A DNA stretch of 64,000 nucleotides, from NCBI GenBank assembly GCA_040285825.1, contig JAUPSS010000003.1, forward strand, positions 1,302,001-1,366,000, read 5' to 3'. Within the stretch, counting starts at the first letter, position 1; each line of letters begins with the position of its first letter. Below are positions 10,501 to 58,584 of this stretch, one piece after another. The notes below the pieces were generated by a model. That model saw nothing but the letters and a program-made list of their open reading frames with translations. It was not told the origin of the DNA and ran no database searches. Both the position numbers and the translations under genes were made by a program. Source of the stretch: Eukaryota sp. TZLM1-RC. Taxonomy: Eukaryota; Protista; Metamonada: BaSk clade.

Positions 10501-10504
10501 GGAT

Positions 10505-15120: not shown

Positions 15121-15159
15121 ACGGTTTACTACTATTTGACATTTTTGTGCTAGTAGCCG

Positions 15160-16780: not shown

Positions 16781-16811
16781 GGGTTATAAGTACAGGAAAG
16801 TCAAATACTAT

Positions 16812-17512: not shown

Positions 17513-17514
17513 TA

Positions 17515-21439: not shown

Positions 21440-22422
21440 ATTTTGTTTTTGCTCAGGTCATATTGTTTCCTTTGGACTCAATGTGACTTTTCTCTGCAGC
21501 ATATGATTGACTGATTTAGTAAGGAAGTTCCTTTGGATTCGGAGTTTCTGATACTGATACCAGTTTGGTTATCACATTCGTTGGGGTCTTCTCCAGCAAT
21601 GACCTTACCTTTTAAACAATTCAGTTCGTCTTCACAAAGATAATGAATATATGATTCATCCTTTTGTTTTTGTTTGACTTTACATTTTTTCAAATCAGTC
21701 TTCATGTGTTAAACTGAAACTCCACAGCCATCTGTCAGAACACTGTCGTCAAAGAAGTAAGCATTAGTTTTTTTTGTTCATGGCACTATGCTGCATGTTG
21801 AGTACTTTTTTCCAAGTTTTAAGTATTTTTATCAAGGTGATTAGTTTGATCACTTTCTTGAGTTTCATCAAACTCTGTGAAAGGAAGCTCAATGGATTCG
21901 TCAATTTTTTTGATTAATTAGTAATAATTTGCATACTTCTGGTTTCAATTCGCATATACGCTGGAGAGAGTGATGTTCCAGTCAAACTGTTTGATATCAT
22001 GTTCAGCCAAGTAGTCTGGTTGATAATTATTTAAGCAATTATCAAAATTGGAGATCATTAAAAGGAAATTAATTAGGAAATAAATGAATAAAAGTTTCTG
22101 AAGAATCATCAGTAACGACAGAATAGCTATTAAAATGGGTGGAAGCCGCAAAAGTATGTTTCTACCTAGTAAGCAATTGCGATACATTTGGGTCAAACTC
22201 CGCAATAATTACAGAGATAAGTGTGATAACATTCTTTTTAACTAAAACATCAGGTGGATTAAAATATGTTTTGTCTTTTGACTTTCATATTCCTTGATAG
22301 GACCCAATTTTGAAATATTCCAACTATGTTTGTATTCAATTTCATGATTTGTTTCAATGTCAATACACCACAAATTGATGTAATAGGAATGAAACATTTC
22401 TAATGAATTAAGGTCAATTGTT
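21440..22422 (-). pseudogene. remnant exonuclease-Fanzor element (third locus)
   Basis: manual translation: WCIDIET (ExoI), NVITLISV, YQPDYLAEHDIKQFDW (ExoII-like), then SVLTDGCGVSV..DLKK..YI..KVIAGEDPN (Fanzor TDG motif and RuvC-I). Confidence 0.7.
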
Positions 22423-26412: not shown

Positions 26413-26441
26413 AATGGTTTGTATCCAAAAATAGTCTATTT

Positions 26442-27850
26442 CTGTGGTTTTCATTTGAAATGCATACTTTCTTCAAGCATCATTCAAACTTATTCCAAGT
26501 ACTTTCATCCTTGGTGTGATCGTTCACAGACGTTCTAGAATCCTCGAATAATTGGCCACCAATCTGAGTGAGGTCATTTCTCCTCTAGAACAATACGTAG
26601 CTTTGAAGCTAGTTTCTTGTGGTCTCTGAAACGCTTCTCGTCTTATTCCATAGTAGTGCTCACTAACTGCAATTTCTAGCTGATTTAGTGATGCAGAAAT
26701 GTTTCTAGACCAAACTTGATTACATTCCGGACAACTGAAATGGCGTTGTGAACTTTAACTTCACCATCAACTTCTCGATAGATCTTTTGGTGTAGCATCT
26801 TGCAGCACTTCACCTTTGCAGATGTCATATATTCATCTCCGATCTTCACATTAACAAATGAGCATTGTAACAACTTGAGAAACGCCTTACGTGGTGTTTT
26901 CACTTTTTGACGTGATGTACCACCACCTCCATTGCCAAACCATACCTTTACTTCTCGACCGTTTGCAAATTTTTTCACTTTGTTGATAATTGAGCTGAAT
27001 CTTTTCTGTTTTCTTATAAAGAAGTCAAATGTGTTTCTCCCCAATGCTTTTCGAGCACCAGATATAATTGCCAATTTAGCAATGATTGTCTTACGTTAGT
27101 GCCTTCATAATCCTTGTAGTCACCGATAGTTGATATTTCAAGCAGATAATGGTTCAATTTCTGCACGTCATAAACATCTATTGATGAGTGGGTCAGTGAA
27201 GCGGAGTGATTGATTTTTCGTTGCTTTGGTACCAAGAAGATATTGGATACGGTCGGCCCTGAACGTGTTCCAATGCTGGAACCACATAGATTTGAGTGGT
27301 TGATGGCCCAGAACACCATTTCAGTTTCGTCATCAGGTACCTGCCACTCAGTAGCTTTTGGTTTCTGACGAGGTCTTGGCCGTTCAACCTTGGCTTGCAA
27401 GGTATGTTTTCTATTCCGAGTGGTTTCGTAGTAATCAAGTTCCCCTCTGGATCTCTTATCAGCCAAGGCTTCTCCAGACAATCTCACTCGTGCTGCTTTT
27501 GGGTGCGTTCTGAAAGTTATACGGACACTATCACCATTAGAAGACATGGTGTAGTCATTAGTTTTTGTTTTAAACAATAAATAAGAGTTTTTCAAAATTG
27601 CATATCTTGACTATCTGGACTAAAATTGACTACTCCAGTCTAACGTACTCCTGATATACATGAACTTCTAAAGTCTAATGAGCAGAAGATTTTTGAACTT
27701 ACTGAACTCCAATTGAAACTGTATTGAAGACACTTGTAATGTTAGTCAACATGGCTTCCTTGCAAAGATTGATTTTGACCAATTTCATATTAATGCAGAT
27801 GATAAATGAATAATTAATGATAATAATTTGTGTAAATACTAGTGGATAAT
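26442..27850 (-). mobile_element. Fanzor family A, longer copy with frameshifts
   Basis: SSNGDSV, VFWAI(..)NHSNLC (RuvC-I region), WFGNG, GDEYMTSAKVKCC, conserved 3' region. Confidence 0.85.
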
Positions 27851-27869
27851 ATTTATATAATTCTGATAT

Positions 27870-29525
27870 TTATTGAACATGCACACTTAATTAAATTAAC
27901 TCAATACTAATGGGACGACTATCATTGAGCCAAGATTTCCTCTACAAAATCTTGATCTGCTTGCTGTCTAGCTAAAGCTTCCCTTATTCGATTGAAAAAC
28001 CGAGGTAATCTATTAATAATGGTAAATTGAATCCGTGAACGCCATAAAAAAATATCAAATCTTTTCATTGTTTTTTCTTGTACCATTTTTTGGAAGTCAT
28101 TCAAAAAAGTTTCTGCTTCATCTGATAATCTTCCATTTATCGAAAATGGGAAAGCAATAAAACCAGCTGTGTGTTTCTATCAGCATAAGCCTCTTCAATA
28201 TCTTTATCATATTTTCTATGTTTTTCTTTTGCTTTAAAATCAAGAGCAGTCACAGAAAGTGTTCTTCTGTGAACCAAAGTATCATTTCCAACATTACATG
28301 AGATAAAGTCAACAATAGCTTCAGAGTTATCAATCCAATCACAGTATACATCACCTTTATCATCAGAACCAAAATTATTCAGAGACAGTGTTTCCTTCAG
28401 CAGAGGCTCTTTGATACACGATATTCTTGCAGTTTGTGCCATATTAAAAACAGTGTCTCTAACAGCATCATGTAATGAAGAACGGTAAGTTATCAATTTA
28501 GAACAATTCAGAGCATGGCGCAAAGTGAGTTGAGGTGAATTCAAACAAATACATTTATCTTTTGATAATAACTGATTAATGGGGATATTCAAATATAATC
28601 TCATTTTTGTTACAAATGCTTCATTAGGGGCACACAATCCAAATCTTCGTGGTACAATGGTTACAAAAAGTGAACAATCTGATGACTTGATTTCACAAAC
28701 ACCCTTTTCCAATAACAATGAGTGAAGATCTTGATTTAAAACAGCCGATCTGCATATATTTTTATAAAGATCATTTTCATACATTCCAGTCAGTTGTTTT
28801 TGTAATGTTCGAAGACTGTATTTTAAATTTAAAAGATTCTTTTCTGGAATATTGCCATTGAATGATTGGAGAAAGCATCGACTCCATTTTTCTACATCAA
28901 TTGTTGAAATTTCTTCATTTAATGCAAAAACAGTGGAACTTTGCGTTGTCATCAATAAATCTTCCCAATCTGCAAATCTTTCGGAAAACTCAAAGATTGC
29001 ATTTCTACATCCACCGATAAAAGCACATGAAGTAAGAATGAAAGCCTTCGTCCAACCTAAACCGCCATAATGTGGACTAAGATAAGCATGGTCTGGAATT
29101 TGAAACATTTTACATCCCAGTAATTGTGACAAAACTTTTGCACGTAACTCATTAAACTTCTGAGCCAAAGGCCTAGTGACAAGAGGATTTGTAGATCGAA
29201 ATATATGATTGAAGTTGGAACTAAAACACAGTCTTATAATGGTAAATTTGATATGTTTCTGTATATCTAAAGTCATCATTCGGTCAATTTTATCGGAAAT
29301 TGAGTTCAACTTTTCAAACAATTTTTTGGTAATTTTATCATTAATTCTTAAAAACGAACCCAGATGACGAATAGCATCAATTGAATATAATTTGGCTTGA
29401 ATTTCAATACCATCAACTATTGTAGAAACTGGGGAATTCGATAACAAAACACATTTAAGTAAATTAAGTTGAAGGCCAATTTTGTTAAATAATTCTTTAA
29501 AACATCCAGTTGCTTCTCTGACAAT
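27870..29525 (-). mobile_element. non-LTR retrotransposon R1, 5'-truncated
   Basis: RHLGS thumb, GGLG, CCHC knuckle, KGDVYCDW RLE; 436-aa ORF. Confidence 0.9.
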
Positions 29526-29724
29526 CTTTTATATTATATAATATATATAATAATATACAATACTTACCACATAACTAATAGTTCCAAAATAAAATATTAT
29601 CGATTCATCTTTTATTGTAGTGTTCGTGCAAGTGTTGGTAAAAGAAATAGTGTTGGTGAAAGAAGTGGTGTGGTGAAAGAGGATTTAATAATTATGTGGA
29701 CAAAACGAAAACCACAAATGGAAA

Positions 29725-29885
29725 CCACAAATTTAGAAGACCTCAATAAGAGTCTTCAAATCCAACGTATTTTGATATAAGCCGATCATCTCCGGATGGT
29801 CAAGTTTAGACATGTGGATGTGGTTGAAGAATTAAAAATTGACATTTCGGATAAAGAATGCATTTCTAGTGAAAACCACAAATAG
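29725..29885 (+). ncRNA. orphan omega-RNA-like Fanzor 3' end
   Basis: ends AATGCATTTCTAGTGAAAACCACAA, matching the family A terminus TATGCATTTCAAATGAAAACCACAG; internal CGATC..GGATG also shared. Confidence 0.45.
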
Positions 29886-30361
29886 TAGTTTCAGTCCACC
29901 ACTGAATGGGAAGAGGACAAGAGGTGAAGGCAGGAGAAGGAAACTGGAAAAAAACATAGAGTTTAGACGGAGTAACAACGACCAGAAGAGCTAGAGGGTC
30001 AATCGAGCTGATGTTGATGACCACTAATAGAGATACAGTGGATAGGCATTTGATACCATTGTGGAAATCAGCAATCAACTTGAAATTGCAATCAGCATGT
30101 CAGACATCGTGTCAAACAGCGAGATTATTTTGACTCTTACCATTTTTCTAACATCATGCAGCAAAAGGAGAACAAGGATAACGAGGTTACGGACTCAGTT
30201 CCCACCTCCTCCTTCAACCTGTTTTTCACAGAACAGATGAGTACTTCCTCCCGAACTCCTCAGTCGGGAACAGTCATCCTGATTTACAGGAATAAGCGGA
30301 AGGTCAGAGCCTCGATTTCTTATCGAAATCGCCGGTCTGATCCTTCCGTGGGGGTAGAGTA

Positions 30362-33300
30362 TTGCACTTTTTCAGTCATCATGTGAGTCATGAAATGGGT
30401 GCTGTTGAATCAGACATGGTGCTAATCACCTTGGATATGGGATGTTCTTCTTTGTGTTTTGTTTTGAATTGTTATTTTCATGTTATTGAGTATGTTATTT
30501 TTTGTGGTTTAGATTCTTGCACTTTAGATATGGGATGTTGTGTCTTAAATTGTTATTTCAATAATGTGGAGTTTGATTATTATGTTTATAATTTATCTTT
30601 TCAATCCAGTAGCTGTCAACATCTTCTATCAACAAACCCATATACTGTTGATTTAACAATGAATGGAGATGTTGAAGCAAATCCTGGTCCCAGAAAGAGA
30701 AGATCTAATTTTAAATCAACTCCTCCATCAAAAATTATGAGAAATGCGATTTTTGACCAACAAACATCAAAGCTTAAGCTAAAAAAACAATAAAAAGCAC
30801 TGAACAGAGAAATTTGTATTGAGAATACAGTGTTCAATATTGAGAACAGGAAGATTTTGACAAAAAAACCATTGAAACCGAGTATGGTCAAAAAAATTGA
30901 ACCAAGTGGTAGTGGCTTCAACCTCATCCATTGATTCAATTCAAATCAATGACCACAAATCAAAATCTTCCCATTGTTATGTGCTTTGACCTTGAAACCT
31001 ATCAGGATGGTCATCTTTATCAAAATCATGATGGCCAATTTCTCCCTCTTGACGAGATTATCAACAAAAGGAGAAAAGAGGGTGCAAATTTCTTGAAAAA
31101 GAAAACTGATGAGCAAATGGGTGAGTGGATTTCTGATCAAAAAGTGTTTTTAATTTCGATTGTTGTTGGTAAGTTTGATCGTCATAATTTCTTTTTGGAG
31201 AGTAAATATTCACTTATATTGAGAATGAGTCCTCAAATCAGATTACCAGACATTGATATGGATGTTCAGGCAGAAATATTCTCTGACGAAAAAACCTTGC
31301 TTCGTAGGTTCCTAAACATTATTGGTGATCATCAACCCCATTGTTTTCTTAATCACAACTTAATGCAGTTTGATTTACAGGTTTTGAAAAATCGATTAAA
31401 CTATTTTGATTTACCATTTCCCACTTTTCCAGATGATACAGCAATTGATGTATTCAATCAACTTTCACCAAGATGGAGGGAAGTAGTTATCAGGGAAACT
31501 GGCTTTTTTCTTCTAGATACTTTGGTTTTTGCCAAAATAATTATCAAAATACCCTACGGACATGGATTAGGCACTCTGGCATATAAAATGATAAATGAAA
31601 AGAAAATCAAACTTCATCAGGAACTTTCTCATATTATACCAATTGATTGTTTAGCTTCTTCTCCTCTGAGGCAAAATTCAATTCAATATGGGCTTTATGA
31701 TTGTTTCCTTTGTCTGAATCTTTTCGTGCTGTTTCAGAAAGACAAAATTATTTTATCATCTTATAAAACCATTCGAGCAACCGTCAACTCAATGGTTAAA
31801 CATTCAAATGTGATATTCAAATTGAGAGAAACTGCTGTAAAATTTCAACAGTTACGTATTCACACCACTTGTTGTTTAAAGCTGTATTTACAGTCTTGTT
31901 TTGAACGTAATTTGTCATTACCACGAATATCTGCCCAATTATATGAATCATTAATGGCCAGAATTCGTTATATTTCAGCTGAGTATTATGGGCAAGAAAT
32001 GGTGAAACCAAAAAGTGTATTTCCAGAGGATTTTGAAAACTTTGTTTATGGTGAAGGAGATTATAGATTATCGACCACCTTTGAACAACAAAGGTTGAAC
32101 AAAACATTGAGTTATGTAGACCATTTGAGATATAGGCCTGAGTTTTTTCCACGATTTCCAACTGATGGCTTCAGTAGACCACCTCAGTATATGGCCCCAG
32201 TAATGTTTGCCAATTTTGAGAATAATTTGAAACTAAATTATGAAAAACATATCAATCGTTTTATTAATGTTGACTTTGACAAACCAGATGTGGAAAATGT
32301 GTTAGCAGAAATGCATAAGCTGGGTGAATACTCAACGCCATTGTCTACAATGGTTTCACTATATAGATTTAGGCTTCGTCAATTCAAAAACTTGTTTTTA
32401 GTTGATGATAGAGATTGCTTGAGTTCATTGTTTCATCATCCTGAAAATATTTCAGACCTTCTGAATGATGAATTGTTAAACAAACATTGATGGATGATTT
32501 ATCATCTACACAGACGCTGAAAATGTCCAATACAATAGCCCAAATTACGAAAATCAAACCACCTGAGCAATTTGACTTTTGGTCTAATATTCTCGATTTA
32601 AACCAACCAATGTTCAAACAGAAGAGCTATAAATTCAACAACATTATACACACAGAGGATTTAATATTGCAGTAGAATTTGTTCGTCAGGATTTTCAAGG
32701 TCAGAAATGTAAGCCAGACAACAAGGCTAGTATTTCTGATTTATATATTCATGATGTTGATGTTGATGCTTTTCAAGACAAACGAATTGTTGTTTGTGAT
32801 CCTGGAAAACGTGATTTATTGTATTTTGGCAGCAAAAAGACTGATGAAGAACTAGCCATGGTGCCTGAACATAAAACTGAACAGCAAAGAAATAGTCGGG
32901 TGAGGAATCAAGACAAAAAGTACAAATGGTTGAGAATGACTCAGATGTCCTGGTCTTTGAAAAGTAGGATGAATGAAAAACAGAAACGATGGGCGACAAA
33001 GTATACTGAGGTAGGTTACGACAGGAACTAAATGATAGAGTCTAAAGATACGACAAACACCGAATATGCAAACACCGAATTATCAGCATTTGCTGCAAAT
33101 TCAGCAACTTTTATAGATTTTTCCTACTTTGTGGTTGCCAAACTTCGGCAAGTTTTTTTTGACAATTGACTTTTATAGTCTTGACTTGTGGAGCATTCAT
33201 AAAATGCAAGCTTTTATTCACAAGCAAAAGACTGAAAGTTGGTTGTTAAAAAGCCTTGTTCAGCAGTTTGGCAATCCAAAAGACACTTTAATACTAATGG

Positions 33301-33680
33301 GTGACTGTGGTAAAAAAGGTTCGAAGAATTTGAAACATCATAGACCTACTCGAGGCATTGGATGGATCCAATTTCTGCAAAGGAATGGATTTGAAGTATT
33401 GATGATTAATGAAGCTTTCACTTCAGGAAAATGTCCTGTTTGTTTTGAAAAGGTTGCTACGTTTTTGAGAGTAACAAATCCCAGATTGTATAGAAGAGAA
33501 AAGACTCCTGTTACTACATGTCATGGTTTATTAGCTTTTAACAGTGAGAGTTGCAAACTCAGTAACAAAGGCTCAACAAAGCTTTTCAATAGAAATAAGT
33601 TGGCTTGTCTGAATATGTTTGCAATTGCTGAAGCCAGAATGAATGGTAATGAAAAATCTCAGTATCTGTGCTGTAGATAG
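30362..33680 (+). mobile_element. 2A peptide - DEDDy exonuclease - Fanzor1 fusion (element X1), frameshifted
   Basis: GDVEANPGP at ~30665-30691; FDLET, NHNLMQFD, YGLYD; in-frame Fanzor N-terminus YKTIRATV..KLYL..LPRI, NFENNL; CDPGKRDLLY, LMGD, INEAFTSGKCPVC, CHGLL, FNRN. Confidence 0.85.
30668..30691 (+). other. 2A-like StopGo (ribosomal skipping) motif
   Basis: DLTMNG-DVEANPG/P matches D(V/I)ExNPGP; followed by an RKRR NLS-like motif. Confidence 0.85.
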
Positions 33681-33765
33681 TTTTTGTAATTATTCCACAC
33701 GAAAATTGATCGTGTATTTTATGGGAATTTCCCATAAATGGTTTTTATGTAATTTACTTGACCAA
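33681..33765 (+). ncRNA. putative omega-RNA hairpins of X1
   Basis: ACACGA..TCGTGT and TTTATGGGAA/TTCCCATAAA stems right after the Fanzor stop. Confidence 0.5.
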
Positions 33766-33779
33766 CAACTTTTTCCAAT

Positions 33780-36700
33780 GAAACCCAGCTTTAATTTATC
33801 AGGTGGAGGGCAACAAAGTGATGATGTTAATTAGATGATGAACAAATTACTGATTCGATCAACAACTTTATCAATCAGTCATCAACTCCACTGTCACATC
33901 ACAAAATACTTGTTTGGCCCATCGCATCAGCGCTATTGTTTTTTAGGTGATTTGTTCAAGATGATTTTTGCTCACAATTGATCAATTCTGACGATGAAGA
34001 AAATACATTGATTCTTCTACCCTATAATAATGCATTTCATCAATCAATTTTGATTGCATCGGATGACGAACAATTTACCATTGGGCAACATTGGGTACTT
34101 CTTGCATTCTGGATCAAATCCAGAACAGTAAAAGCTTTTCTTTTTGATAGTCTTCGTCATAATGAAGATCAACATCAAAAAATTAATTCAATAATTTTTG
34201 AAAAACTTGGAATCAATATCAGTCAGAATTTATCAGAATTGTTTCAATCAAAATTGTATGATTGTGAAATATTCACCATATTGTTTGCAAAAAGAATGAT
34301 CAATTTGTTTTTGTCAAATCAGCACAATTCAATTGATCCAGCTCATGTTAAACATTTTGTCAACCAAGACAAAAGATGTTTTTATAGCTGTGTTGACAGT
34401 GAACGAAAATTATTTGAGACACAGAAATGCTCCTCTGTACAAAAAACCATCAGAAAAAGGCGAGCTGATGTATTGAGCAGACCTTGGGAACGTTTAAAAA
34501 CACTTTTCAATGAGAATCCACTGACTCAATTTAAATACCCTTTAATGACATTATCAAATGTCAAAACACAATTTATTCTCAAAATTCTACATTTTGATAT
34601 TGAAACTTTGCTGTTGGGTAAAAAGTTCAGTGATGAGGATGAAATAATTGTCATTGCTGCAAGAGAACATTCCATCTCTTACTGTCAATCTACAAGAAAG
34701 ATTGTTGCAAATTCTGTTTCTCATATTTTTACTCGAGAACAGATTGAATTAAATCTTTGTTTTTGTGATCTTGTAGAAAAATCAACAAGCAGAAATGAAC
34801 ATTATTGCAAAGTTGATGATAAAGATATCACTTTATATCATCATTCCTCTGAAAAAGAATTGCTGAGTTCATTTAAAGAATTATTAGAAACTTATAATCC
34901 TCATATAATATGTGGTTTTAATATTCTCAAATTTGACATCCCACATATTATGCAACGTTCTGAAAATGAGGACTTTTTTAAGGGTGAAATCGATGCTACA
35001 GAATGGGTTCAATTCTATAACTCAAATTTAATAGAATTGAATCACAAACACTTGAACCCCTTAATTGCTGGTCGATTTGTTGTTGATACTTGTAGTATTT
35101 ACACAAATTATTATCAACCACGCAAACTAAACACAGTTTCTAAAATTTTATTAGGGGAAAGTAAAATTGACCTTGATCCTCAATATATTGCAAAGTATTG
35201 GAAGGTTCAAGAAGATGATACCTTCTCAGATTTTTCCTTATCCCAAAGAAGAACTGCAGTTGCAGTTTATTGTTTAAGGGATACTGATTTAACCATGAAA
35301 TTATTTAATTTCTTTAACAATGACCAATTCATGGAAACTGTTAAACATAAACCTTATGATGGTTATAATGACAATCTAAAAAATGTCATCAGAGATCCGA
35401 AAATGATTGAAGTGATCGATGAGACAGTAATTAGGTGTCAGAAAATTTCTATTGTTGGTTTAGAATTCATTTGTGGTTATTATTTGCATCTTTTTGACTT
35501 AAACCCAAATGCTATTTTACCAAAAATTGAAACCCAATTATTTCGTGACGCTTTTCTTGTGGTCACGTCCCAAAGCGATGAGGAAAGTTCCCTTAACGCA
35601 AAGACAAAAACAGCTTTGCAAAATTCTCGTTGTTGTCCGTTGTTGGATTTCTATCACCAACACTTTAAAGAAAAACTTGTTCCAAAAGTTTTATCAAAAA
35701 AAGGAATCAGTAATATTTTGTTTTACACAATTGACAAACTGATTGTGAATTTCAAAAATAACATCCAGGAGCATTACTTTGCTTACTTGGATCGGTTTGT
35801 TGATGTTTTCTATGATGTCAAGAGAAACAACAATGTCCTGAAAAAGCAAGGTAAGAAAAACTTCCCATCATTCATCAAGATAAATCTCTCCTTCTAGAAG
35901 GATGTAGAGATATTGATGGCGAAACTTCTGCAATGAGAAACAAAGTCTCATCAATTACTTCGCTTTTCATTAATGACCAGATCCCTTTTTTACTTCCCAG
36001 TAATTTTAAAAGGGAAAAGTATTCAAAATTTGATTTTTCATCATAATCAAATTACTATTTGAGGGCAATGTTTTATATTAATAATTATTTAGAGGATGAG
36101 GAGAGTAAACTCTTTCATGCTCTGCCTTTGAAGAATTCTTGTATTCCCTCGTATATCAGAATTGACAAGACAAGTTTATTGGACTTGTTCTTTGTCCAAT
36201 TCAAGGACATTCTTGGTCCAAGGTCGTCTTACCAATGCAATAATCAAGCTGCTGATTTAGTTTTATGGGACACCGTTGTAAAAATGGACGAGATTAAAAA
36301 CACGGAACTTTATTCAGAAAATTCCAAGTACATCATGTCTAGTATCGAGACTGATGGAATAGCAGTAAGTTTCATTCAATCTAGAATGGACTTGAAAAAG
36401 TACAAAGTAACTGCAAAAGAATTGAAAGATAAAGAAGAATATATTGATGACCCCAGCTTCAATCCTTCTGAATTCCAAGATATGACCCTTGCTGCTGCTG
36501 ATCCAGGACAATCTGATCTACTCTATTTTTCTGCCAATTTAGCTACCTGAATGACTCATTCAAAAAAGCCCGAGAGAGATAAATATGTTCAATTCAGGTA
36601 CACTCAAAATCAATGAAGATTTGAGTCGAAAAGTTCCAAATTCAAAAGAATAAGAGACAGCATACGGAATGACACTCTTATCACAATAAGTAACTCTACT

Positions 36701-37571
36701 GGTAGAGTGATTGATCTATCCAATTATGAACCATCTGAAAAGCAACAACAAAGGATGGATTTAAGCAGCAGTAAAATTAATCAAATGACTGAAAGAACAA
36801 TTAGTTTATTAAGAGGAAAAGTACCTCAAGAAATCAATATTCCCCACGAAATTGATTACTCATTCAATTTGAGAAATAATGATCACACGACTAAATCTGT
36901 AGCAGAATGGGAAGCAACTTTATCCCAATTCAATTCCAAAAGCTGCAGGTTTGATAGATTTATGGAGTATATTAAGAATTATGTGAATAGTATTGTTGGT
37001 GAAGTCTATCATCAATAAATATTTAGGAAACTAAGATGGTGGGCTGAGATTAATCGCACAAGATCTGATGCGAAGATGGTCAAGAGATTCAAATCAGTAA
37101 TTGGTGATCCAGGCCAAGTAGTTATTGGAATCGGAGACTGGGAACAACGAAAACACATGAAATTCAAAGAACCTACTAAAGGAAAAGGTTTGAGATTTCT
37201 ATTTAAATAGGCTGGTTATAAGGTCTTTTTGATTGATGAGTTTCGAACCAGATGCTGTTGTTGCAACTGTAAGAAAGCGGAGAAAACAGTTGAAACATTC
37301 CAATGGTGCAGAAATCCTAGGCCATGGAAGAGGCATGAGATGTCTATTCGTCACGGGGTAACCATGTGTAAATCATGCGAAAGTTTGTGGAATAGAGATC
37401 GAAATGCTTCGCTTAATATGTTGGCAGTGATGGAAGCACATGTAAAAGGTGGAGATAGACCGGAATACCTGCAGAGATTCAAGGTTGACAAAGGTTCAAA
37501 GAAAAAGGTATCAAGAAGAAAATCTTCCACTTCCCAAAAACTCAGTCCCTCTACATTGGTGTAAAAAGGAC
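33780..37571 (+). mobile_element. Ulp1-type protease - DEDDy exonuclease - Fanzor1 fusion (element X2), with stops and frameshifts
   Basis: LDDEQI, LPYNN, HWVLL, FDSL, QSKLYDC; FDIET, GFNILKFD, YCLRD; in-frame Fanzor N-terminus; LPLKNSCIPSYIRID, ETDG, ADPGQSDLLY, GIGDW, KEPTKGKG, IDEFRT, CKSC..WNRD.NASLNM. Confidence 0.9.
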
Positions 37572-37605
37572 ACTTATTTCATTGTTATAGACATCATCTG
37601 TTTCA

Positions 37606-38880
37606 ATGAAACCATGTGAACTACCTCTTGAAGTGCCAGATTTCTACAATAAAGAACGTCTCAATGCTCTCTACAGACCATTTCGGCACTCAGACCCTGT
37701 CATGGTTCGAGACCTCACCTCCTTCTGGAGGTCAACAGTTTCCAGATACCTTCTTAAACAATGTACTTGCTCAATCAGAGTGTCCTCTTTTCAAGAAGCT
37801 TTTGACTATGAAGGGAAACGTCCCTCTTGTATACCGGAACTTGCCCAGCAGCTTTGGAAAAACAGTGAACTCTTAGAACCATGGAGATTTGCTGAATACT
37901 GCCTGTCTTCCTTCACTTCCAAAGCTATTTCTTTCTTGATCAAGTCCCCTCTTGAATGGGTAATTTCCAGAGTAAAATCTCCGTTTTCTGCTGATGATGT
38001 TCTCATCCATGTCAACACTTGTATGCAATTGTCTGATGAACTCTTTTCTTGGCTTATGGACCATTGTAGCACCAGTGTATTCTCATTACAAACATTTCGC
38101 TCAATTGTGACCACCAGCCCAGTTCTCTCCAGCAATACGTCAAAGTTAGATATCGAGGTTATTTTAATTATGCTTTTGCGCAAATTAAAACTGTTTCCTA
38201 TCTATTCAGATGATTCTGTTTTGGTCAACCTAACTCAATCAGGTTCTTTATTAAAATCTTTTGGAATTGTTGGGGTCTCTACCTCAAAATTAAAGTCTTT
38301 TTCTAATAAAGATTTGGAATCTTTGTTAAAGCTCAAGATATTGGAATTTAATTTTAAATTTAAAACTGAATCATTGTGCCATGATATTGATCATTTTTCA
38401 CAAATTTCCAAACATTTGCTTAAACAATCAAAAAAAATGGAAGCTATTTCTGTTTTAAAGAGAAAGCAACATTTATTCAAAGTTTATAAAGAAAAGGCTG
38501 GTATTTTGGAAAATTTAACTCAAATCATTACTGCAATTGAACAAGCCCATGATTCAAAGCTAATTATTTCCACCCTCAAAGAAGGAAATAGCATTATTCA
38601 AAAGATTTGTCCGTCTGCTGATGATGTGTCTGCCATAATGGATGATTGTTCTGTATCGCTAAGCTTAGTTCATGATGCTTCAGCAGTAACTTCAATGGTT
38701 GAAGACAGTGAAGTAATTGATGCTGAGTATCAGCAGTTGGAGAAGGAAATTGCGTCTTTGGCATTAGAGACCGAACCAATACCTAGCCATCGACCTCTAA
38801 TAGAAGAAGAGAAAGAAGAAGTAGTAGAAAACGAGAAGGAAGAGGCTGATGAACCAAAGACACTGGTTGAGCAACAATAA
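37606..38880 (+). CDS. CHMP7: CHMP7-like ESCRT protein (N-terminal winged-helix-like region plus Snf7 domain)
   Basis: RLNALYRPF..FW..P.C N-terminus; KMEAISVLKRK..LENL..AIEQA..LKEG..DDV..MDD..EYQQLE Snf7 pattern. Confidence 0.75.
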   Translation: MKPCELPLEVPDFYNKERLNALYRPFRHSDPVMVRDLTSFWRSTVSRYLLKQCTCSIRVSSFQEAFDYEGKRPSCIPELAQQLWKNSELLEPWRFAEYCLSSFTSKAISFLIKSPLEWVISRVKSPFSADDVLIHVNTCMQLSDELFSWLMDHCSTSVFSLQTFRSIVTTSPVLSSNTSKLDIEVILIMLLRKLKLFPIYSDDSVLVNLTQSGSLLKSFGIVGVSTSKLKSFSNKDLESLLKLKILEFNFKFKTESLCHDIDHFSQISKHLLKQSKKMEAISVLKRKQHLFKVYKEKAGILENLTQIITAIEQAHDSKLIISTLKEGNSIIQKICPSADDVSAIMDDCSVSLSLVHDASAVTSMVEDSEVIDAEYQQLEKEIASLALETEPIPSHRPLIEEEKEEVVENEKEEADEPKTLVEQQ

Positions 38881-39139: not shown

Positions 39140-39265
39140 CATACTATCCATTGGTGCCAATAATGCACCACAGCATACCATTATTGAGTCGATTCTCCAT
39201 AATGCTGGTTGGAAGGCTTGTTGGAATGTCGTTTTTCCACCAACATACACAATATAATGAATTAG
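39140..39265 (+). pseudogene. possible IS630/Tc1 DDE transposase relic
   Basis: NNAPQH..ILHNAG..VVFPPTY resembles DNAPxH..G..FLPPYSP; short and degenerate. Confidence 0.25.
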
Positions 39266-39284
39266 TAAAAGAAACTCGTTTATT

Positions 39285-39885
39285 GACACTCAGAAACAAT
39301 GTTTTTAATATGGCAAGAAATGTAAGAATCTGATGTATTAAAGGGCCTCTGCTGAGAGAAACACTGTCATTGAATAATTTTGGTTCTGATGATAGAGGTG
39401 ATGTATACTGTGATTGGATTGAGAACTCTGAAGCTCTTGTTGACTTTGTCTCCTGTAATGTTACAAATGCCACTTTAGTTTAAAGAAGAAAACTTAATCC
39501 TGTAAGTGCTCTTGAATTTAAAGTGTATGAGAAACATAGAAAATATGAGAAAGATATCGAAGAAGCTAATGTTGATAGAAATAAACCACTTGTTTTATTA
39601 CTTTTCCATTTTCTATAAACGGAAGACTATCAGTAGAAACAGGAACTTTTTTGAATGACTTCCAATAAATGGTTCAAGAAAAAACAATGAAGAGATTTAA
39701 TGTTTTTTTATGGCGGTCGCGAATTCAATTTGCTATGTTAATAGACTACCTCAGTTTTTCACCGAATAAGAGAAGCAATGGCGAGAAAACAAGCAGATCA
39801 GGATTTTGTAGAGGAAATGTTCATTCATTGCAGTTAGTCCCATTAGTTCTGATTTAAATTTATTAAGTGTTGTAGTTCAATAACA
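39285..39885 (+). mobile_element. non-LTR R1 3' part
   Basis: DRGDVYCDW, VQEKTMKRF, homologous 3' UTR. Confidence 0.85.
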
Positions 39886-41626
39886 AATACTATTGAAACT
39901 TCTATTTTGTGCAATTGATCATAACCACAAAAATTTGTGTATGTATTCAATTGGATCAAGAATGGATAATAACAATGTTGACCATCAACTTTCGGGCGGT
40001 GTTCTGAATCCAGAGGCAAAGAAGATGATTCACCCCCCGGTCCTGACCCATGCAACACCAAATTGCTATTTCGTACAGAATTTACACAAATATGTTATGG
40101 AATAGCAATGCCTTTGATGTGGGTACCGACACATGAAGAAATCAGCAATCCCGACTTCCGTCCGAGAACTATACTAGACCAACTGCTGATGAAAGGAGAT
40201 CGCCGAGTCCTGCGCCGCAACAAGTTTGATTGTTTTATAAGGCAAAAAAGAATAATGGGATTAATTGAAAAAATTAAACAAATAGCCAGTGGAAGAGAAA
40301 CTATAATTTGGTTTGGTAGTGGAGTTGATGGGCCCTCAAGACAAGCTGTGAAAACCCCAAGGAAGCGTAGTATAGTGTTTATTGAATAATTTGCTTATGT
40401 TTTATATTTTTATAGATACAAAAAACAGTGAATAAATGAATTTTATTGTTGACTGACTGATCTTTTCTCGATTGACATCCCCACCACAATGGCAAATCCA
40501 GAGTTGCTACTTCGAGGTCGTGTTCTTTCTTGGAAGTATAGCCATCCTCAAGAAAGGACAACTGTTGCTGTTGCCGCTGCCAACTTTTCCGCCGGTGTTG
40601 CAAAAGATGCAAAAGAGCCACAGTTTCGAACTTGCGAACTGTTAGCGTTTTGGGCTGTCGTCTTGCTCAGTATTATATACTGATACATCCGAACATGGCT
40701 CATTGGTTGTACCATCAACAGTTCTGGTATCAATGTCAGGATTTTGTGGTGATGGTCAATCCTCCAATCCGGTAACCCTTTGAGACCCACCGGGAAGTCT
40801 ACGAGGGTCTTTTTAATGCTTCTGACCCAATTATGTGGCCATTTTCCTCTGGGTTGTGATGAAGTAACTGGCAACTGGTGCCATTTTGACATCCGGAGCT
40901 TTTGTGTACTTCAAATGACGAACAGCTTCTGCCAAATTATGACAGATGGACCAATGCAATGGAAGTTCAACTTCTATAGAACGATGGCAGTCTTCTTTCA
41001 CTGCAAATCTCCGAAAAAATTTGCTTCTGCCGTTCTCAAAGATGCATCCGTTTCTGAGCAGCTACCTGGTTGGTACGAGCAACATCATGCTTACATTAGC
41101 GATTTGTTCGACCAACAAGTAGGTACCCCTGCTAGGTTCCAGGCCCTCTTGGAAGAAACTGACCTCCATTTGAACACTGAAACAGTGAACTTGATCTTCT
41201 TCTCCAATTTCCATGTTTTGTCGTTTTTCGAGAATACGGCGAGTGAAACAATGAATAGGCTCGCTCTGGCTTGCTCCGTATGCTACTCTCCAGGCTTCAT
41301 TTCATTCAGCCAACAACTCGAAAAACACTTTTTACGTTTAAAACCAAACCAACACATCTAACCTTTTTACAGGAAGAACCTTGCCACATATACCATTGCA
41401 TCGAATAATATGTTAGTGAGAGTAAGCTTCTCAACAGGTTCCCAAGAAAACCAAAAATCGCCGCACCACCAGACCATTCGCAAATTGTTAGAGCCAGTGA
41501 AGAACACGCTATGCCTGCCAAGAGTTGAAAGTGAAACTCGAGACTTTAAAAACAGGTTCGCCCTAGGCAACATCTAAGAACTGATGACGCCTATGAGCCT
41601 CCTACCGTTGATCCAATTGAATACTT
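39886..41626 (+). mobile_element. Fanzor family B copy with permuted order (RuvC-I..KTPRKR segment precedes the N-terminal half)
   Basis: 39890-40368 matches the reverse complement of ~17930-18385; 40368-41626 matches the reverse complement of ~18380-19660. Confidence 0.8.
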
Positions 41627-41629
41627 TGA

Positions 41630-42266
41630 TTTTGAAAAAAGCAACTGAAATGTTTTATATAATTATTTAACAAAAATGTTCTTCAACTGAACTTATTTAA
41701 ATGTTGTTTACTTTCAAAATCTCCAATTTCAACAAAAGTTTTTGGAATTGAAATTCAATCCATGTTATTTTCATCTGATGCAATTCGTCAGCTATGTTCG
41801 TTCTTAGGCAATATTGATGAAGTCTCCAAACAATTATTTGAACAATTGAATTTTATGTCGGAAAAAATTGACCAAATGATGAAATTGGATGTATAGAAAC
41901 ATATCAAATTTAGCATAATAAGACTGTGTTTCAATTCAAATTTCAACTATATATTTCAATCTATTAATCCTCTTGTCTCTAGACCGGTGGCCCAAATGTT
42001 CAATGAATTGTGTGCTAAAGTTTTGTCTCAACTGGTAGTGTGTAAAATGTTCCAAATTCCCACTTATGCACATCTTAGTCCACATTATGGCGGTTTAGGT
42101 TGGACTAAGGCTTCTATTCTTACTTCATGTGCTGTTATTGGTGGATGTAGAAATGCGATATTTGAGTTTTCTGAAAGATTTGCAGATTGGAAAGACTTAT
42201 TAGTGACAATGCAAAGTTTTACTATTTTTGCATTAAATGAAGAAATTTTAAAAATTGATAATGAAA
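41630..42266 (+). mobile_element. non-LTR R1, part upstream of the gypsy insertion (continues at 49831)
   Basis: ..KIDNE|KWNQCFPQSFN is continuous across the insertion. Confidence 0.85.
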
Positions 42267-45200
42267 TGTAGGTATCTCACTAGTGAGTACCTAAGTATAT
42301 AGAATAACATTAAATAAAATTATCTTTATCTTAACCCGCCTTAACTAACCCATACATACACAGCTAGCATAATGCCTAACGGCAACAATAATTATTGTGC
42401 GTCACAGGCACACCAAACAGCAAACAGCAACAGCGCTGTAAACGACAAAAAGATGTCTGGGTATGTCAGACATCTTTCAGAGGAGACCTTTCTAACCCTC
42501 CTCTTCACATTATTTCGAGTATAATGAGTGCTCCAACAAAGGAAACGAGTACCCCTCCTTCCTCAACGAGTTCGGATGTATTTCATCCCACTCCTGGTCA
42601 AACGAGTTTGAGTGTTTCACACTCCACTCATGGAACGTTGAGTTCGGGTGCAACCCACCTCACTCCAAATTTATTTAGTTCGGGTCAACACCCCACTATT
42701 ATTCATACGAGCAGAGATCCTCGACTCCCTCCTCCAAATCCGAGTTCGGGTCAAAACCCCACTCCTAACCTAACTCTTCCGAGGTAATCCCTCCCAACAA
42801 CAACGCCCATTCAACGGCTACCACAGCCTTGACTACGGCCAAAGTCTCGCAGGATAAAGCTCTTGCCACTAGCCCAGAGTTAGAGGCGCTTCTCGCCACT
42901 TTCTCAAAAGAAGAAAGTGAGAAACAGGAGCCAACAGACTTTGTGGAGTCTCTCCCTTCAGATACGTCCCTGTACCCAGACTTAGAAAACTGTGTTTCGG
43001 TACAAACCTTAAAGGAGACTTTAGAAGGATTCAGGGAAGATCCCCTCACCTCACAAGTCATCAAAAACTCTATAGAGCTTCTTGACAAAGAGAGTAAGGA
43101 GTTGACGGGTAGACCTGCTGAACGCAGAATAGGACTATCCCCACTAGACTCCTCTTATAAATCCATCATGTCCAAGCCTCGCGCTGACAGATTCGATTTT
43201 ATCGGAAAAAAGGCCACCCTCGACATATATTACTTTAGAATACTGTGGTTGGAGGTCATGGAGTATGGTCGAGACTTCTCTAACAATTTGGATGGAACAT
43301 ACACCTCCTCCCAGACTGGTTTAGGCCAGGTCTGGACAAAATTTATGAAGACAACAGCATATCTGGAGTGAATTATATGGTAATAAGAGAGGTTTACAAA
43401 TATTACCCATCGTCATCATATCCTGATCTCGTTGAGATGAGACCTGCATCTCAGCCGTTCAGGCTAATTTTCGTCGAACAAGGAGTCACCTTCAAACGAG
43501 ATCATGGCAACATGAAAACGACAGTCATCTCCACCTATAGGTCTCCCCCCAATCACCACAATGTCAAATTGGGGACACTTCTTGGACGTCCTCACTATCC
43601 AACCATCGGACTCATCTGTCCCAATGAAAGAATCGACCTCACATCAAACAGGTCCAGGATTGAGCAGACAAGATCTCCTCATCTCGATCAGGAACATTAG
43701 CCGGAATCCATGATCCACGTCAAGTTCTTGACCTAAATCTACAATCTGACGTTGGATACCACTATAAAACAAAGGCTGTAGACCATGATACGCTCCATGA
43801 GCCCCAGACTCGAGTTTCCAGAGACTCAAATGAAAATAGTACACTTTCTACTGGAATTCGCTCTCTGGGACAGCACAGGCAGAGGAGGAACGACAAATGT
43901 CGAGAAAATAGAAACGCCTCAAACAAGTTCAGTTCAGCAGCAGAAACAAATTGCTGACATGGTCAACAGTCTATCTCAGTTACTAGCAATACAAGGAGGT
44001 GCTACAACTGAGATACAACAACAAATAGATTCGTTAAAGTCTCAGCTTGACTCGCTTCGGACACCCAAAATTTACAGAATAGACCCCAATTTCATTAACA
44101 AAATAGGGCCACCTATTCATGCTTACGACCTTTTCAGGTCCATTCTGGCGACGACCAACCCCCTGGGAATCTCGGGTTGCATCAGTGCAAGAATCATTTC
44201 CTTCTGGAAACAACAACAGATCCTTAGCATGTTATCTACAGACGCAGAAATTTTACTGCTTCTTTGTAGGAGGAGCCAATTCAACTCGCTCCATGACGCC
44301 AAATTAGCTCTCCACAAACCCCAATTCAATTGGCGTAAGGTCAATTCAATCGAAGACGCGGAAAGGGAGTTTGCAATATACATGGAAAATTTTGGAGACA
44401 TCCTGAGAATGTCTACATACATCACTGATGTATCAGCTAGGATCGAAGATGTGGATCACTCGAGTGGAGTATTCACTCTTCCAATGTCAACAGTGGCTCA
44501 TGCCTTTTTAACAGGCATCAACAACTTGGCTTTCACTGAGCCCCTGTTCGAAGAATTCTGTAAAGAGAGCTATTGGAAGGACAAGCTAGTGAGCTTCCCC
44601 CAATTAACAAGGAAGGTGCGAAATGATTTATTATCATGGATGAAAGTTGCGCAAAATAGGGAAACGGTCCAGCTATTGAGGAAAGCTGCATCCAGACCCA
44701 AAATAGAAACAGGTGATTTTCACAACTCAGCCGGGAAAAAGAGAACAAGCCAACCAGATTCATCCATCCCCAACCTTAAAAAAGAAAAACATTACAGAGG
44801 AGGCCAAAAGTTCTGTACTTTTTGTCAGAAACCAGGCCATGTAATTGCAGAATGCGAAGATCCCAAATGCACCAGATCTCTGGTTCCACTAAATCAACGA
44901 AGAAGCGCCGGCAGAAGTAGAGGCCGAGGAAGACCATTCAGAGGTAGTTATGATAGTTTTAAAAATATTCATAGAGGCCATAGTAGAGGCCAAGGTAGAT
45001 ATAGGGGCCGAGGTGGCCGTGGTACGAGAGGAAAAAAACATCGTGCATATATGTTTTATATACACCAATCATCGCACGCTTCAGCTCCCGAATTGAGCCA
45101 TACTTATACAACTAGCCAATCGGAACATTCAGCTCAAGCATCCCTCTCAAATCCACTCTCTTTCGGTAATGATAATAAAGTAGATAAATATTTGAGTTTA

Positions 45201-48200
45201 AACAGTTCAGAAAGAGATTCATACAATCGAGCAGATGAATCTGCACCTTGTATGAACCACAACAGATCCAAGCAGCCTCAGTTCTTAGAGCTTCAGGTTA
45301 GAATCAACGATACGGTCATAAAAGGCATGATAGACACAGCTGCATTTTGTTCTGTCATTTCCCTCGACTTAGCAAATCGGTGTTCAATGTCCATAAATGA
45401 AAACGATATAACACAATTCATCCCTGCTAGCAATGTATCAACGAATTCGCTTGGGAGTGCACAAGGCATTCTGACGTTCAATGTTGGCAGCATCGCGAAC
45501 CAAGTATCAATAAACAATACTCTCCCCATTATACCAGGTTCGAACAAATTTTTAATTGGGGTAGACATGTTACAACAACTTGGGCTACTGACATCTGACC
45601 GTTTAGTTATTTTACTAGACGAAGAGCGCCGCACCCTGCTAAACGCTGAAGCCATTTTTGATAACAGAATTAAAACTCACCAAATTGGCCACGTAGAATC
45701 AACTTCTTGCAGTGAAGAAGATTTTACTCAGCAATTAGATAGATCTGGATGTGAGATTAATTTAGATGATAGTGAGTATAATAACAGTTTGTCTGATATA
45801 TTAGCTCAATACAAGGACGTGTTCAGCGAAAAGCCCAATAAAGATGGAATCGATTGTCCACCTATGACGATCCCCTTCTACAATACTAATACAATTGTAC
45901 ATAAACCAGCTCGGGGCCTCAACCCAAAGAAATTACAAATAGCCAATCAGATTTTTGATGAATTGATTGAAATGGGCTATGCAATTGAATCGAACTACAA
46001 GTTCAGTTCCCCAATAGTATTAGTGATATACCTTGATGATCGAAAACCTAGGTTGACGGGCGATTTCAGTGGTAAAGATGGAGTTAACGCGCATACAATT
46101 CCGGTCGAGTCTAACTTGCCATTAATTTCAGATGTTTTGGAATTTCTGAGTCAGGCCAACTTTATTGCCACTTTAGATCTCCCAAAAGTTTTTTGGCAAA
46201 TGAAAGTAGCCGACGAAGATGTTGAAAAGACGTCTATCTCTATTCCTGGCAGATCCATTATGTTTAAAAGGGCATGCTTCGGACTATAGAATATCCCAGC
46301 GATTTTTCAAAATGTAATGATGGAAATTTTCCAAATAAAAGGAGTATTTATTTACATCGATGATATAATCATAATAGGATCAACCCTTCAAGAATTCTTT
46401 GACAGAATACAGAGGGTACTGCAATGCGCAAGGGATAGAAGAGTCAACATTGGATTGAGAAAATGTAAATTCGTTACTGACAAACAACCAATTGACATTT
46501 TAGGCAGCACTTTCCAATTCAAACAACGAAAAATTAGCAAAAAACGAGTAGATGCTTTAATAAACATACCTGCTCCAAAAACTATCAAGGAAGTACGGTC
46601 ATTAGTTGGCTCAGTCAATTTCATAAGAGATTGGCTCCCAAATATTTCACAACTAATAGCACCCATAAATGAGCTAATCAAGCACAAACAACGTCGTGTA
46701 AATTGGGAAGCCAAACACGATCATCTATTAGATCAAATAAAACAACTGATTATTAATCACATGCCTCTGGAATTACCTTCACCAGACAAACGCATTCTGA
46801 TTAGCACCGTTGCATCTGACATCGCAGTAGGAGGAGTCATTTGGCAAGAAATCGCACCTTATGCACCCATTGGAACTGCATTAAAAGATAGAAAAGTAAC
46901 ACCAATTTCCTTTTATAGTAGGATTTTAACCGATACTCAAAGGCGTTGGTCTACTTTACAAAAAGAATTATATGCGATACTATTAATACTAACAGAAAGT
47001 CATCTGGAAAGCTTTCTCATTACTAGACACCTGACCATTTTCACAGATCACCGGAATATTGCATTCCTCGCCACGGCTCCTGAAAAGAACAGAATCGTCA
47101 AAAGATGGTTACCTATCTTATCAGAATTTGACTTTGATATCGTACACGAAACAGGAGAAGACAATCACTGGGCTGACATGATGTCAAGAAACATAGATAC
47201 AAACTTAGAAAATCCGGAAATAAATCACATCAACTACCCACATAATCCCTTTTGGCATGGTGAAATACCACCCCCTGACGACGATTCTGATTATGAAGAT
47301 CCAGATCCAATCCACATTTTTGAATTAGCAAAGCACCCAGATTTACCCATTTTTTCAAATTGGTGTTGTTGTCGAACTTAAATTGAATTAGTAGGTATCT
47401 CTGTATTTTGACTGATGACGTGATACTCGTTTATGAATCAGTTTTATTAATAAACTTAGATTTCTCTCTCTCCCCTTCGTGTGTTCATCTGCCTAACGGC
47501 ATCAATAATTATTGGCCCTTCCTATTTCAGATGACTGTTCCCTCTGTTAACCTGACGTCTCTTTCTTCCATGAAAGTTGAAAGTGTTCTTCTGTTCCTAT
47601 AGGAGTGAAAGATCTATTCTTCTGTGACTTCTAAGAAAGAGCTTGTTCCAGCAAGACTCTTGGTCGATTCTTTTCTGTTAGAGTCCCTATCTCTCCAGAA
47701 ATCCGACGTCTCTTCCAGTGACGATGTTCTTCTTAGACATCTTCAATCTGTCGTATCGTTCGCCACGTACGAAGATTTTAGTCTGGCTATGTCAGAACTG
47801 AAGCTTGATGTCCGTATTGGTGACGTCCGAGAACGTATGTCCTGTTACCTGCGACGTTTCCTCCAGGTAAAGAGTAGGGCTTCCGGACTGAAGTTACCAG
47901 ACACAGCTTTTCTGAATCGATTTGCCAGAGGAATTCTTCCCGTAGGTCTTCAACGTTCTCATACCAACGATGCACCGGAGTATTTAACAAACCCCATATC
48001 TTCCCTCTATTGAGCCAGTACTGTATTTGTCCTCAGAAAAATGGGAAAAAGTAGTGTTGTTGTCGAACTTAAATTGAATTAGTAGGTATCTTGGTATTTT
48101 GATTGATGACGTGATACTCGTTTATGAATCAGTTTTATTAATAAACTTAGATTTCTCTCTCTCCCCTTCGTGTGATTATCTGCCTAACGGCATCATTGGC

Positions 48201-57677: not shown

Positions 57678-57744
57678 CGCTCTTAGGCTTATATAATATT
57701 AATAGAAAATAAATTCACTTTATCTTAACTTGACGACTTAAGGC

Positions 57745-58580: not shown

Positions 58581-58584
58581 TTGG

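Follow-up and report, generated by a model that had tools for sequence, protein, structure and literature searches.

Why should a proofreading-type exonuclease stand directly in front of an RNA-guided nuclease, in the same reading frame and in two neighbouring elements? This question is raised by a stretch of 64,000 nucleotides (nt), here called the window, of Eukaryota sp. TZLM1-RC (Skoliomonas; assembly GCA_040285825.1), in which an upstream element, E1, is followed by a downstream one, E2. We take strain TZLM1-RC to be the free-living metamonad Skoliomonas litria. According to the Skoliomonas genome paper, the assembly was made from Nanopore reads and polished with Illumina reads; the window is gene-dense and packed with decayed repeats. 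Described Fanzor1 proteins are stand-alone nucleases. In both E1 and E2, an exonuclease of the family-B DNA polymerase (PolB) type is fused in frame to a Fanzor1 nuclease without a polymerase. A total of 11 copies were compared, namely the two in the window and nine paralogous loci, L001-L009 (85-94% identical), among which L004, L005, L006 and L007 are sisters of E1, and L001, L002, L003, L008 and L009 are sisters of E2. Broken frames were searched piecewise; pieces were X-joined for trees only, and majority codons were used for the counting of changes only.

The two open reading frames (ORFs) described in the original prediction are present at 30931-32490 (519 amino acids (aa), E1) and 33978-35897 (639 aa, E2), and each carries the complete DEDDy set attributed to it, with the D and E of ExoI, the D of ExoII and the Y and D of ExoIII. 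The exonuclease domains are as follows.

30967 to 31740, forward strand: E1 PolB-type DEDDy 3'-5' exonuclease (PF03104, 38 bits; D30988, E30994, D31372, Y31687, D31699)
34572 to 35321, forward strand: E2 PolB-type DEDDy 3'-5' exonuclease (PF03104, 57.4 bits; D34596, E34602, D34935, Y35268, D35280)

Both scores are above the Pfam gathering cut-off for DNA_pol_B_exo1 (PF03104), which is 23 bits. The ExoI DxE, ExoII NxxxFD and ExoIII YxxxD motifs occur in both domains. Neither window copy lacks any of the five DEDDy residues, and nearly all of the sisters have them too; in E1, every copy that covers these positions keeps them. The E2 domain matches yeast Pol delta (E=3e-8). A usable structure model, which covers the E2 exonuclease only (deep alignment, core pLDDT (predicted local distance difference test) 80-96), matches PolB exonuclease domains with a best E of 1.6e-9. 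The proposed exonuclease fold is therefore backed by a model for E2, the only one whose fold was tested, and by the Pfam scores for both ORFs.

Each ORF had also been said to run in frame into a Fanzor1 N-terminus, and alignment with stand-alone Fanzor N-termini bears this out for both. About 50 Fanzor-type proteins have N-termini that match the last third of the E2 ORF, and for 17 of these there is a match at the Fanzor C-terminus as well; the E1 ORF aligns with this Fanzor N-terminal region too. Both chains meet the first residues of stand-alone Fanzors about ten residues past the ExoIII helix, and the exonuclease-Fanzor junction is collinear between E1 and E2. The Fanzor1 parts extend as follows.

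31741 to 33680, forward strand: E1 Fanzor1, broken (RuvC-I D32798, RuvC-II E33411, RuvC-III N33594)
35322 to 37564, forward strand: E2 Fanzor1, broken (RuvC-I D36500, RuvC-II E37238, C4 zinc finger, RuvC-III D37397)

The downstream pieces, for which Fanzor C-terminal regions had been predicted, have PpFz1, SpuFz1 and GtFz1 as their best PDB matches (E=1.6e-17 for PpFz1 and 2.5e-12 for SpuFz1), and E2 shares 30-35% identity with Fanzors of 600-700 aa. RuvC-I, -II and -III and zinc-finger motifs are present in broken frames in both elements as proposed, with the refinement that the RuvC-III residue of E1 is N, not D, in all five copies. The DPG of Fanzor1 RuvC-I appears as CDPGK at 32798 in E1 and as ADPGQ at 36500 in E2, and is kept in most copies; the alternative RuvC-II glutamate stands just before the C4 zinc finger in both elements, and the E1 finger carries substitutions in the window copy. 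Moreover, an intact piece of L001 scores above the cut-off for PF07282. The reported lack of a polymerase was likewise reproduced: no family-B polymerase domain (PF00136; motifs SLYPS and YGDTDS) was found in either element, and the chain goes on as Fanzor. E1 and E2 give no collinear DNA alignment, in line with the original prediction, and their proteins are 20-21% identical over 371 aa spanning the junction; for the two families the identity is about 21-23%. A view of E1 as a nuclease-dead Fanzor on account of its RuvC-III N was dropped, since GtFz1 naturally has the D-E-N triad and is active, and D606N raised the activity of SpuFz1 (PMC11423790), which suggests that the nucleases of both E1 and E2 were probably active.

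The fusion is a genuine multicopy feature of TZLM1-RC. The junction is present in eight of the nine further loci, on three contigs, and short-read contigs, apparently of sister copies and probably from the assembly's own sample, extend in both families from ExoIII across the point where Fanzor begins. The annotated proteins of the assembly include paralogs of both ORFs. Natural open frames of different E2 copies overlap from the leader through LSGG, protease and exonuclease to the Fanzor stop (about 1,450 aa), those of E1 overlap from a 2A peptide to the stop save for one T-run of copy-dependent length, and every break is missing from at least one copy. Long reads in a repeat-rich genome, where some of the frameshifts sit in homopolymers, might yield an artefact of assembly or join adjacent fragments by chance, but the same junction at eight further loci and in short-read contigs contradicts misassembly, one of the refuting outcomes named in advance, and makes this explanation extremely improbable.

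Both window copies are dead, a point that the original prediction did not state. Two further features bear on their condition.

30791 to 30930, forward strand: E1 linker, broken (nonsense codon 30791-30793, frameshift near 30915-30930; L007 reads through)
33791 to 37605, forward strand: E2 element, 5'-truncated (88-94% identity to L001, L002, L003, L008 and L009)

The E1 Fanzor1 has frameshifts near 32656 and 33153 and stops at 32673 and 33029. Its 519-aa ORF ends where it does because of an internal 313-nt deletion at a 5-nt GAATT microhomology (32470-32474), which is absent from all four sisters. A programmed frameshift at the E1 T-run near 33153 was rejected, since the length of the run varies between copies. 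The E2 Fanzor1 has a frameshift near 35870, and the remainder is a single frame with five in-frame stops. Retrotransposons and a 1.3-kilobase (kb) tandem repeat are nested in other copies of both families (L001 7440-9987, L002 11655-18525, L004 11720-17108 and L008 10776-14128).

Selection was assessed by a simple count on majority codons with few events, in which changes common to at least two copies approximate the active lineage and private changes are counted separately. For the shared changes, the ratio of non-synonymous to synonymous rates (dN/dS) was 0.25 in the E1 exonuclease (6 non-synonymous, 9 synonymous, p=0.007), 0.24 in the E1 Fanzor (p=2e-4), 0.28 in the E2 Fanzor (p=6e-8) and 0.29 in the E2 protease (p=0.06). 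By this count, the E1 exonuclease and both Fanzors were under purifying selection. Private changes were near neutral in E2 (0.9-1.2) and gave 0.5-0.8 in E1. With outgroups all found with E2 as query, the Fanzor tree groups E1 with E2 (support 78/86, with a long-branch warning), and an exonuclease tree uniting E1 and E2 lies 1.6 log-likelihood units above the free search (approximately unbiased test, p-AU 0.55). A single old fusion is the simplest reading, because the junction is collinear; two fusions would also be possible.

Both genes extend further 5' than the ORFs first described, with a 2A peptide and a putative nuclear localization signal (NLS) in E1, and with a leader, an LSGG site and an Ulp1-like protease in E2.

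30632 to 30691, forward strand: E1 2A/StopGo-like peptide, closing the E1 leader (ends DVEANPGP, motif 30668-30691)
30692 to 30703, forward strand: E1 RKRR, putative basic NLS-like sequence directly after 2A
33796 to 33807, forward strand: E2 LSGG, candidate cleavage site of the Ulp1-like protease, judged from its sequence
33900 to 34330, forward strand: E2 Ulp1/C48-like cysteine protease (H34089, D34146, Q34245, C34263)

A putative 2A/StopGo motif of the form D(V/I)ExNPGP lies in frame with the downstream protein in L007 and P0170, and the 2A motif shares one ORF with ExoI in L007 and P0170/P0175. The E2 leader is about 200 aa long and of unrecognised type; in L001, LSGG lies in one ORF with leader, protease and ExoI. 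The H-D-Q-C residues of the E2 protease are kept in all five covering copies, and the G after C is E in the window copy only. The top Atlas matches of this protease are Peptidase_C48 (0.86, 184 shared features), and Pfam C48 gives E=0.03 (P0151), which is below the cut-off. By analogy with 2A peptides and the GG-cutting proteases of this clan, both leader arrangements would release the nuclease. The E1 leader (window 30400-30600, L006 and L007) contains a T/G-rich repeat of variable copy number, whose translation in frame with 2A is a Cys/Phe-rich peptide.

The elements had been called tandem, a word that here does not imply kinship by duplication. E1 and E2 are diverged without collinear DNA and are not a duplicated pair, and the evidence points to two families at one host gene start. 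The features around this site are the following.

33737 to 33777, forward strand: 41-nt spacer between the E1 end and the left duplication, with no match in other copies
33778 to 33785, forward strand: left target duplication ATGAAACC (chance within 12 nt of the junction 4e-4)
37606 to 37613, forward strand: right target duplication, the first 8 nt of the host ORF
37606 to 38880, forward strand: intact host Snf7/CHMP7-like gene, its start codon being the insertion site (PF03357, 35.3 bits)

All six E2 copies stop at the same base, which is followed by ATG (one copy has one extra base), and in five of the six this ATG opens an ORF of 125-424 codons. The docked genes are Snf7/CHMP7-like (window), HSP70-like, ARS2, Elongin A and one unnamed. 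With 1.6% of local ATGs opening such ORFs and 5.9% lying in frame within them, the probability of this docking by chance is at most 4e-6. A second copy of the ATG-starting sequence is found on the 5' side in three of the six copies: in the window (8 nt, 5 nt from the homology start, chance 4e-4), in L009 (7 nt, 4 nt away, chance 2e-3) and in L008 (10 nt, 70 nt before the point common to L001, chance 6e-4). L002 and L003 have lost their E2 5' ends, and L001 shows no clear duplication. This repetition of the ATG-starting sequence indicates that the docking ATG is the host's, duplicated at E2 insertion. The sole E2 copy whose ATG opens no long ORF, at L009 14126, has kept its 7-nt duplication.

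From the hairpin that ends E1 to the host start codon downstream there are 27 nt in L005 and 55 nt in L007, and in the window the left ATG copy follows the hairpin after 41 nt; no such host gene was found next to the E1 end in L004 and L006. The spacer is plausibly the original upstream DNA of the Snf7/CHMP7-like gene, and E1 and E2 most likely adjoin because both families insert at host gene starts: E1 would have inserted 41 nt before the Snf7-like start codon, and E2 at the codon itself. At window 33778-33834, the left host-ATG copy is in frame with the truncated E2 at LSGG, so that the truncated E2 could at one time have been expressed from the former upstream DNA of the host gene; the frame is now interrupted by a small deletion shortly downstream.

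The E2 duplications of 7, 8 and 10 nt are not of fixed length, and the precise 3' end, variable 5' truncation and variable duplication (three of six copies) agree with the pattern of a non-LTR (long terminal repeat) retrotransposon or its passenger. No clear duplication was seen for E1, nor in three other docked ends. The traits of the cut-and-paste transposons that host Fanzor1 (Mariner, hAT, MuDR, ISL2EU) were not found, there being no transposase within the element, and the only inverted match at E2 is one of 5-7 nt at the 5' point common to L001 and L008. Neither a reverse transcriptase nor a poly(A) or repeat tail is present in the elements. Short inverted repeats together with a duplication of 2 nt had been considered for the E2 ends, but this account was given up once the longer ATG-anchored duplications appeared.

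The conserved 3' ends of both elements are candidate omega-RNA scaffolds.

33660 to 33736, forward strand: E1 conserved 3' end, candidate omega-RNA scaffold (three predicted stem-loops, the last being the TGGGAATTTCCCA hairpin)
37514 to 37608, forward strand: E2 conserved 3' end, candidate omega-RNA scaffold (three predicted stem-loops; the host ATG closes the last one)

The E1 3' boundary is common to four of five copies and degenerate in L006. Its fold gives z=-5.2 for 33640-33740, which is partly flank; z for the E2 3' end is only -1.7. The predicted last stem of E2 pairs CAUUG with CAAUG and would therefore need the host AUG, which recalls Fanzor1 scaffolds that include the target duplication (PMC10711439). 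No compensatory changes or covariation were seen in the E1 and E2 3' ends, the candidate scaffolds had no Rfam match above threshold, and no RNA run containing this DNA was found. If the scaffold reading of E2 is true, the guide would be the start of the host coding sequence, and the target-adjacent motif (TAM) would contain ATG.

What would the exonuclease do in such an element? We propose that E1 and E2 are members of two families, old and diverged, of a mobile Fanzor1 element without recognisable transposase, whose single gene would encode a polyprotein. The leader would be freed by a 2A skip in E1 or, probably, by the Ulp1-like protease at LSGG in E2, and the rest of the chain would join a 3'-5' exonuclease of PolB descent to a Fanzor1 that was active, with the element's 3' end as omega-RNA scaffold and flanking host DNA as guide. 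After guided cleavage, the tethered exonuclease would degrade the free 3' ends, beginning with the displaced non-target strand. A cut so trimmed would not be simply re-ligated, and the empty site would be destroyed or pushed into template-dependent repair. We assign a probability of about 0.5 to this reading, in which the exonuclease trims 3' DNA ends left by Fanzor cleavage. Proofreading exonuclease domains prefer single-stranded 3' ends, and the nearest relatives of the exonuclease domain are DNA polymerases. The further suggestion that trimming favours homing is a poor fit and weaker than that of deletion, since homologous recombination depends on 3' tails and a 3'-5' exonuclease degrades them. 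Cleavage by SpuFz1 gives 5' overhangs and a non-target strand that is flexible (PMC11423790), and for the DEDDy domains of Dada transposons a role in the processing of cleaved 3' ends has been proposed (PMC3706591).

Several points weigh against end trimming. None of the 11 copies is intact. Shared changes in the E2 exonuclease give a dN/dS of 0.69 (p=0.31), i.e. no significant constraint, so that a functional exonuclease is supported by selection for E1, by intact catalytic residues for both, and not significantly by selection for E2. The trees did not decide between one and two fusion events. The right junction of E2 rebuilds CA-ATG plus the whole guide and thus resembles the target, which leaves self-avoidance unexplained. 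The variable 5' ends and duplication lengths make excision, which restorative homing needs, doubtful.

A possible but unlikely alternative is that the exonuclease serves insertion by an RNA route, in which a non-LTR reverse transcriptase of the host genome would be primed at a nick beside ATG, while the fusion would open or mark the site and trim the primer or flap to the CAAUG match at the RNA 3' end. The precise 3' end of E2, its variable 5' ends and its ATG-starting duplications of 7-10 nt form the pattern of target-primed reverse transcription, 4-5 extra bases occur at two E2 5' junctions, the element has no transposase, non-LTR elements are abundant, and DEDDy exonucleases travel with rotifer retroelements (PMC5408684). 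Yet this pattern needs no exonuclease, the elements carry neither poly(A) tail nor reverse transcriptase, and duplications were seen in three of the six E2 copies, with none clear for E1 or in the three other docked ends. In addition, flanks past the ATG are only marginally alike among copies (p=0.075), which leaves guide-directed site choice unsupported. The more specific idea of a transposase-free element whose Fanzor, tethered exonuclease and own RNA steer insertion to the start codons of host genes, while reverse transcription is provided in trans, is speculative and unlikely. If RNA-guided insertion were true, the last stem of the omega-RNA would be completed by the target ATG, and the element would be a natural end-trimming insertion system that also rewires the 5' ends of host genes.

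It is quite unlikely that the exonuclease is captured viral or host polymerase cargo without a role tied to Fanzor, or that it acts once separated from Fanzor. The confinement of the fusion to one genome in our searches, the lack of significant constraint on the E2 exonuclease and the processing signals of the polyprotein would suit such a history, but the five catalytic residues are kept across two families about 80% diverged, the E1 domain is under selection, the polymerase half is cleanly absent, and only about 10 residues, with no 2A or GG site, separate ExoIII from the Fanzor start. Maturation of the guide, another suggestion of the original prediction, is less likely for a PolB-type domain. 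Trimming of the 3' end of an omega-RNA made from a precursor that extends into the host gene would give E2 transcripts, which would enter host coding sequence, the defined guide end they need, and some DEDDy enzymes act on RNA (PMC5408684); this role is nevertheless improbable, as all nearest matches are DNA-polymerase proofreading domains and not RNase D/Rrp6 types, and guide maturation by other Fanzor1 proteins requires no domain of this kind (PMC11423790).

The fusion on which the preferred reading of end trimming builds is, as far as our searches reach, new among Fanzors. The search for intact homologs, proposed as a check, returned the nine paralogous loci, no intact copy (n=11) and no fusion outside TZLM1-RC. 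Among 1.84 billion representatives, phmmer found exonuclease-only (113) or Fanzor-only (51) matches, and both domains together only in a TZLM1-RC paralog. Word-indexed protein searches gave TZLM1-RC proteins only, and their blanks are weak as these searches are length-limited. A metagenome scan returned three complete polymerases and no fusion; viral scans returned no fusion and nothing other than three ordinary 645-aa Fanzors without exonuclease. The architecture had been claimed as undescribed, and the main Fanzor papers and a 2026 review indeed mention no exonuclease. A full-text literature search, with most subscription journals outside its coverage, found no natural TnpB/Fanzor-exonuclease fusion and no start-codon targeting rule.

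Compared with described Fanzor1 proteins (SpuFz1, PpFz1, GtFz1; PMC10432273, PMC11423790, PMC3627910), E1 and E2 share the WED/REC N-terminus, the DPG at RuvC-I, the alternative glutamate before the zinc finger, RD or RN at RuvC-III (E1 having D-E-N as GtFz1), a structured conserved 3' end, and the nature of a multicopy element without its own transposase. They differ in the N-terminal PolB exonuclease within the same chain, in the 2A or Ulp1-like leader, in size (about 1,200-1,450 aa vs 600-700 aa), in that no long terminal inverted repeats were found, and in the docking of E2 at start codons with variable duplications. With the proofreading domain of family-B polymerases (Pol delta, herpesvirus and giant-virus PolB; PF03104) they share the ExoI/II/III motifs, the fold and about 30% identity (E2), but they lack palm, fingers and thumb, and Fanzor follows directly; the trees left the donor lineage undecided. 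Dada (PMC3706591) and rotifer LTR/Athena elements (PMC5408684, PMC6431247) also carry a mobile-element DEDDy 3'-5' exonuclease with a proposed role in 3'-end processing, and Dada is also target-specific, whereas their exonucleases are RNase D/WRN-like and belong to a DDE transposase or have an ORF to themselves, instead of being attached to an RNA-guided nuclease. Engineered exonuclease fusions such as TREX2-SpCas9 (PMC13370227) likewise tether a 3'-5' exonuclease to an RNA-guided nuclease, but they are man-made and of other nuclease and exonuclease families, whereas E1 and E2 are natural and known from sequence.

A natural fusion kept in two deeply diverged families would mirror the deletion-biasing design of engineers and could provide a compact template. 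The insertion pattern bears on how Fanzors spread without a transposase, and predicts a TAM containing ATG and guides from host coding starts. Where an element separates an essential gene from its upstream DNA and the gene survives, the element may moreover provide a new promoter. Every copy seen is dead, only one genome is known to carry the family, and the role proposed for the exonuclease is read from sequence.

Other Fanzor-like remnants occur around these elements. A third, far more decayed Fanzor family (21440-22422 and 20854-21500, minus strand) has ExoI- and ExoII-like motifs upstream, at 3.9 bits only. E1-related Fanzor remnants with 41-44% identity, also with RN at RuvC-III, lie at window 11222-11960 (minus strand) and L006 13600-14760; their 5' parts are missing, and no exonuclease was detected upstream of them. 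A further Fanzor-like family (9799-10535, 16805-17542 and 26435-27171, minus strand) has its 3' ends about 40-100 nt upstream of the start codons of kinesin, small GTPase-like and MAP kinase genes, and a piece of its 3' end stands upstream of E1 at 29852-29890 (forward strand), and likewise in L007. At L003 8098-8647 (minus strand), an E1-type C-terminus is joined to an E2-like 3' end and docked at ATG with the same 15-nt spacing; this locus and a loose end at 33734 make 3' ends appear swapped between families. A 3' end shared by E1 and E2, considered for the loose end at 33734, was rejected, as in alignments the two ends are different; one E1 copy was probably joined to an E2 end. Another conserved 3' end, at window 14600-15159 (forward strand) and L006 14800-14869, abuts host start codons and is followed by ATGTCAC, with which an internal TGACAT could pair.

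Among the remaining repeats of the window, fragments of non-LTR retrotransposons are numerous (37-1240, 27869-29529, 39195-42525, 50166-53497 and 56900-62100), a gypsy-like element occupies 43785-49681, and a duplication of approximately 11-kb period is seen. A RING-finger gene at 6754-7041 contains a 48-nt coding tandem repeat.

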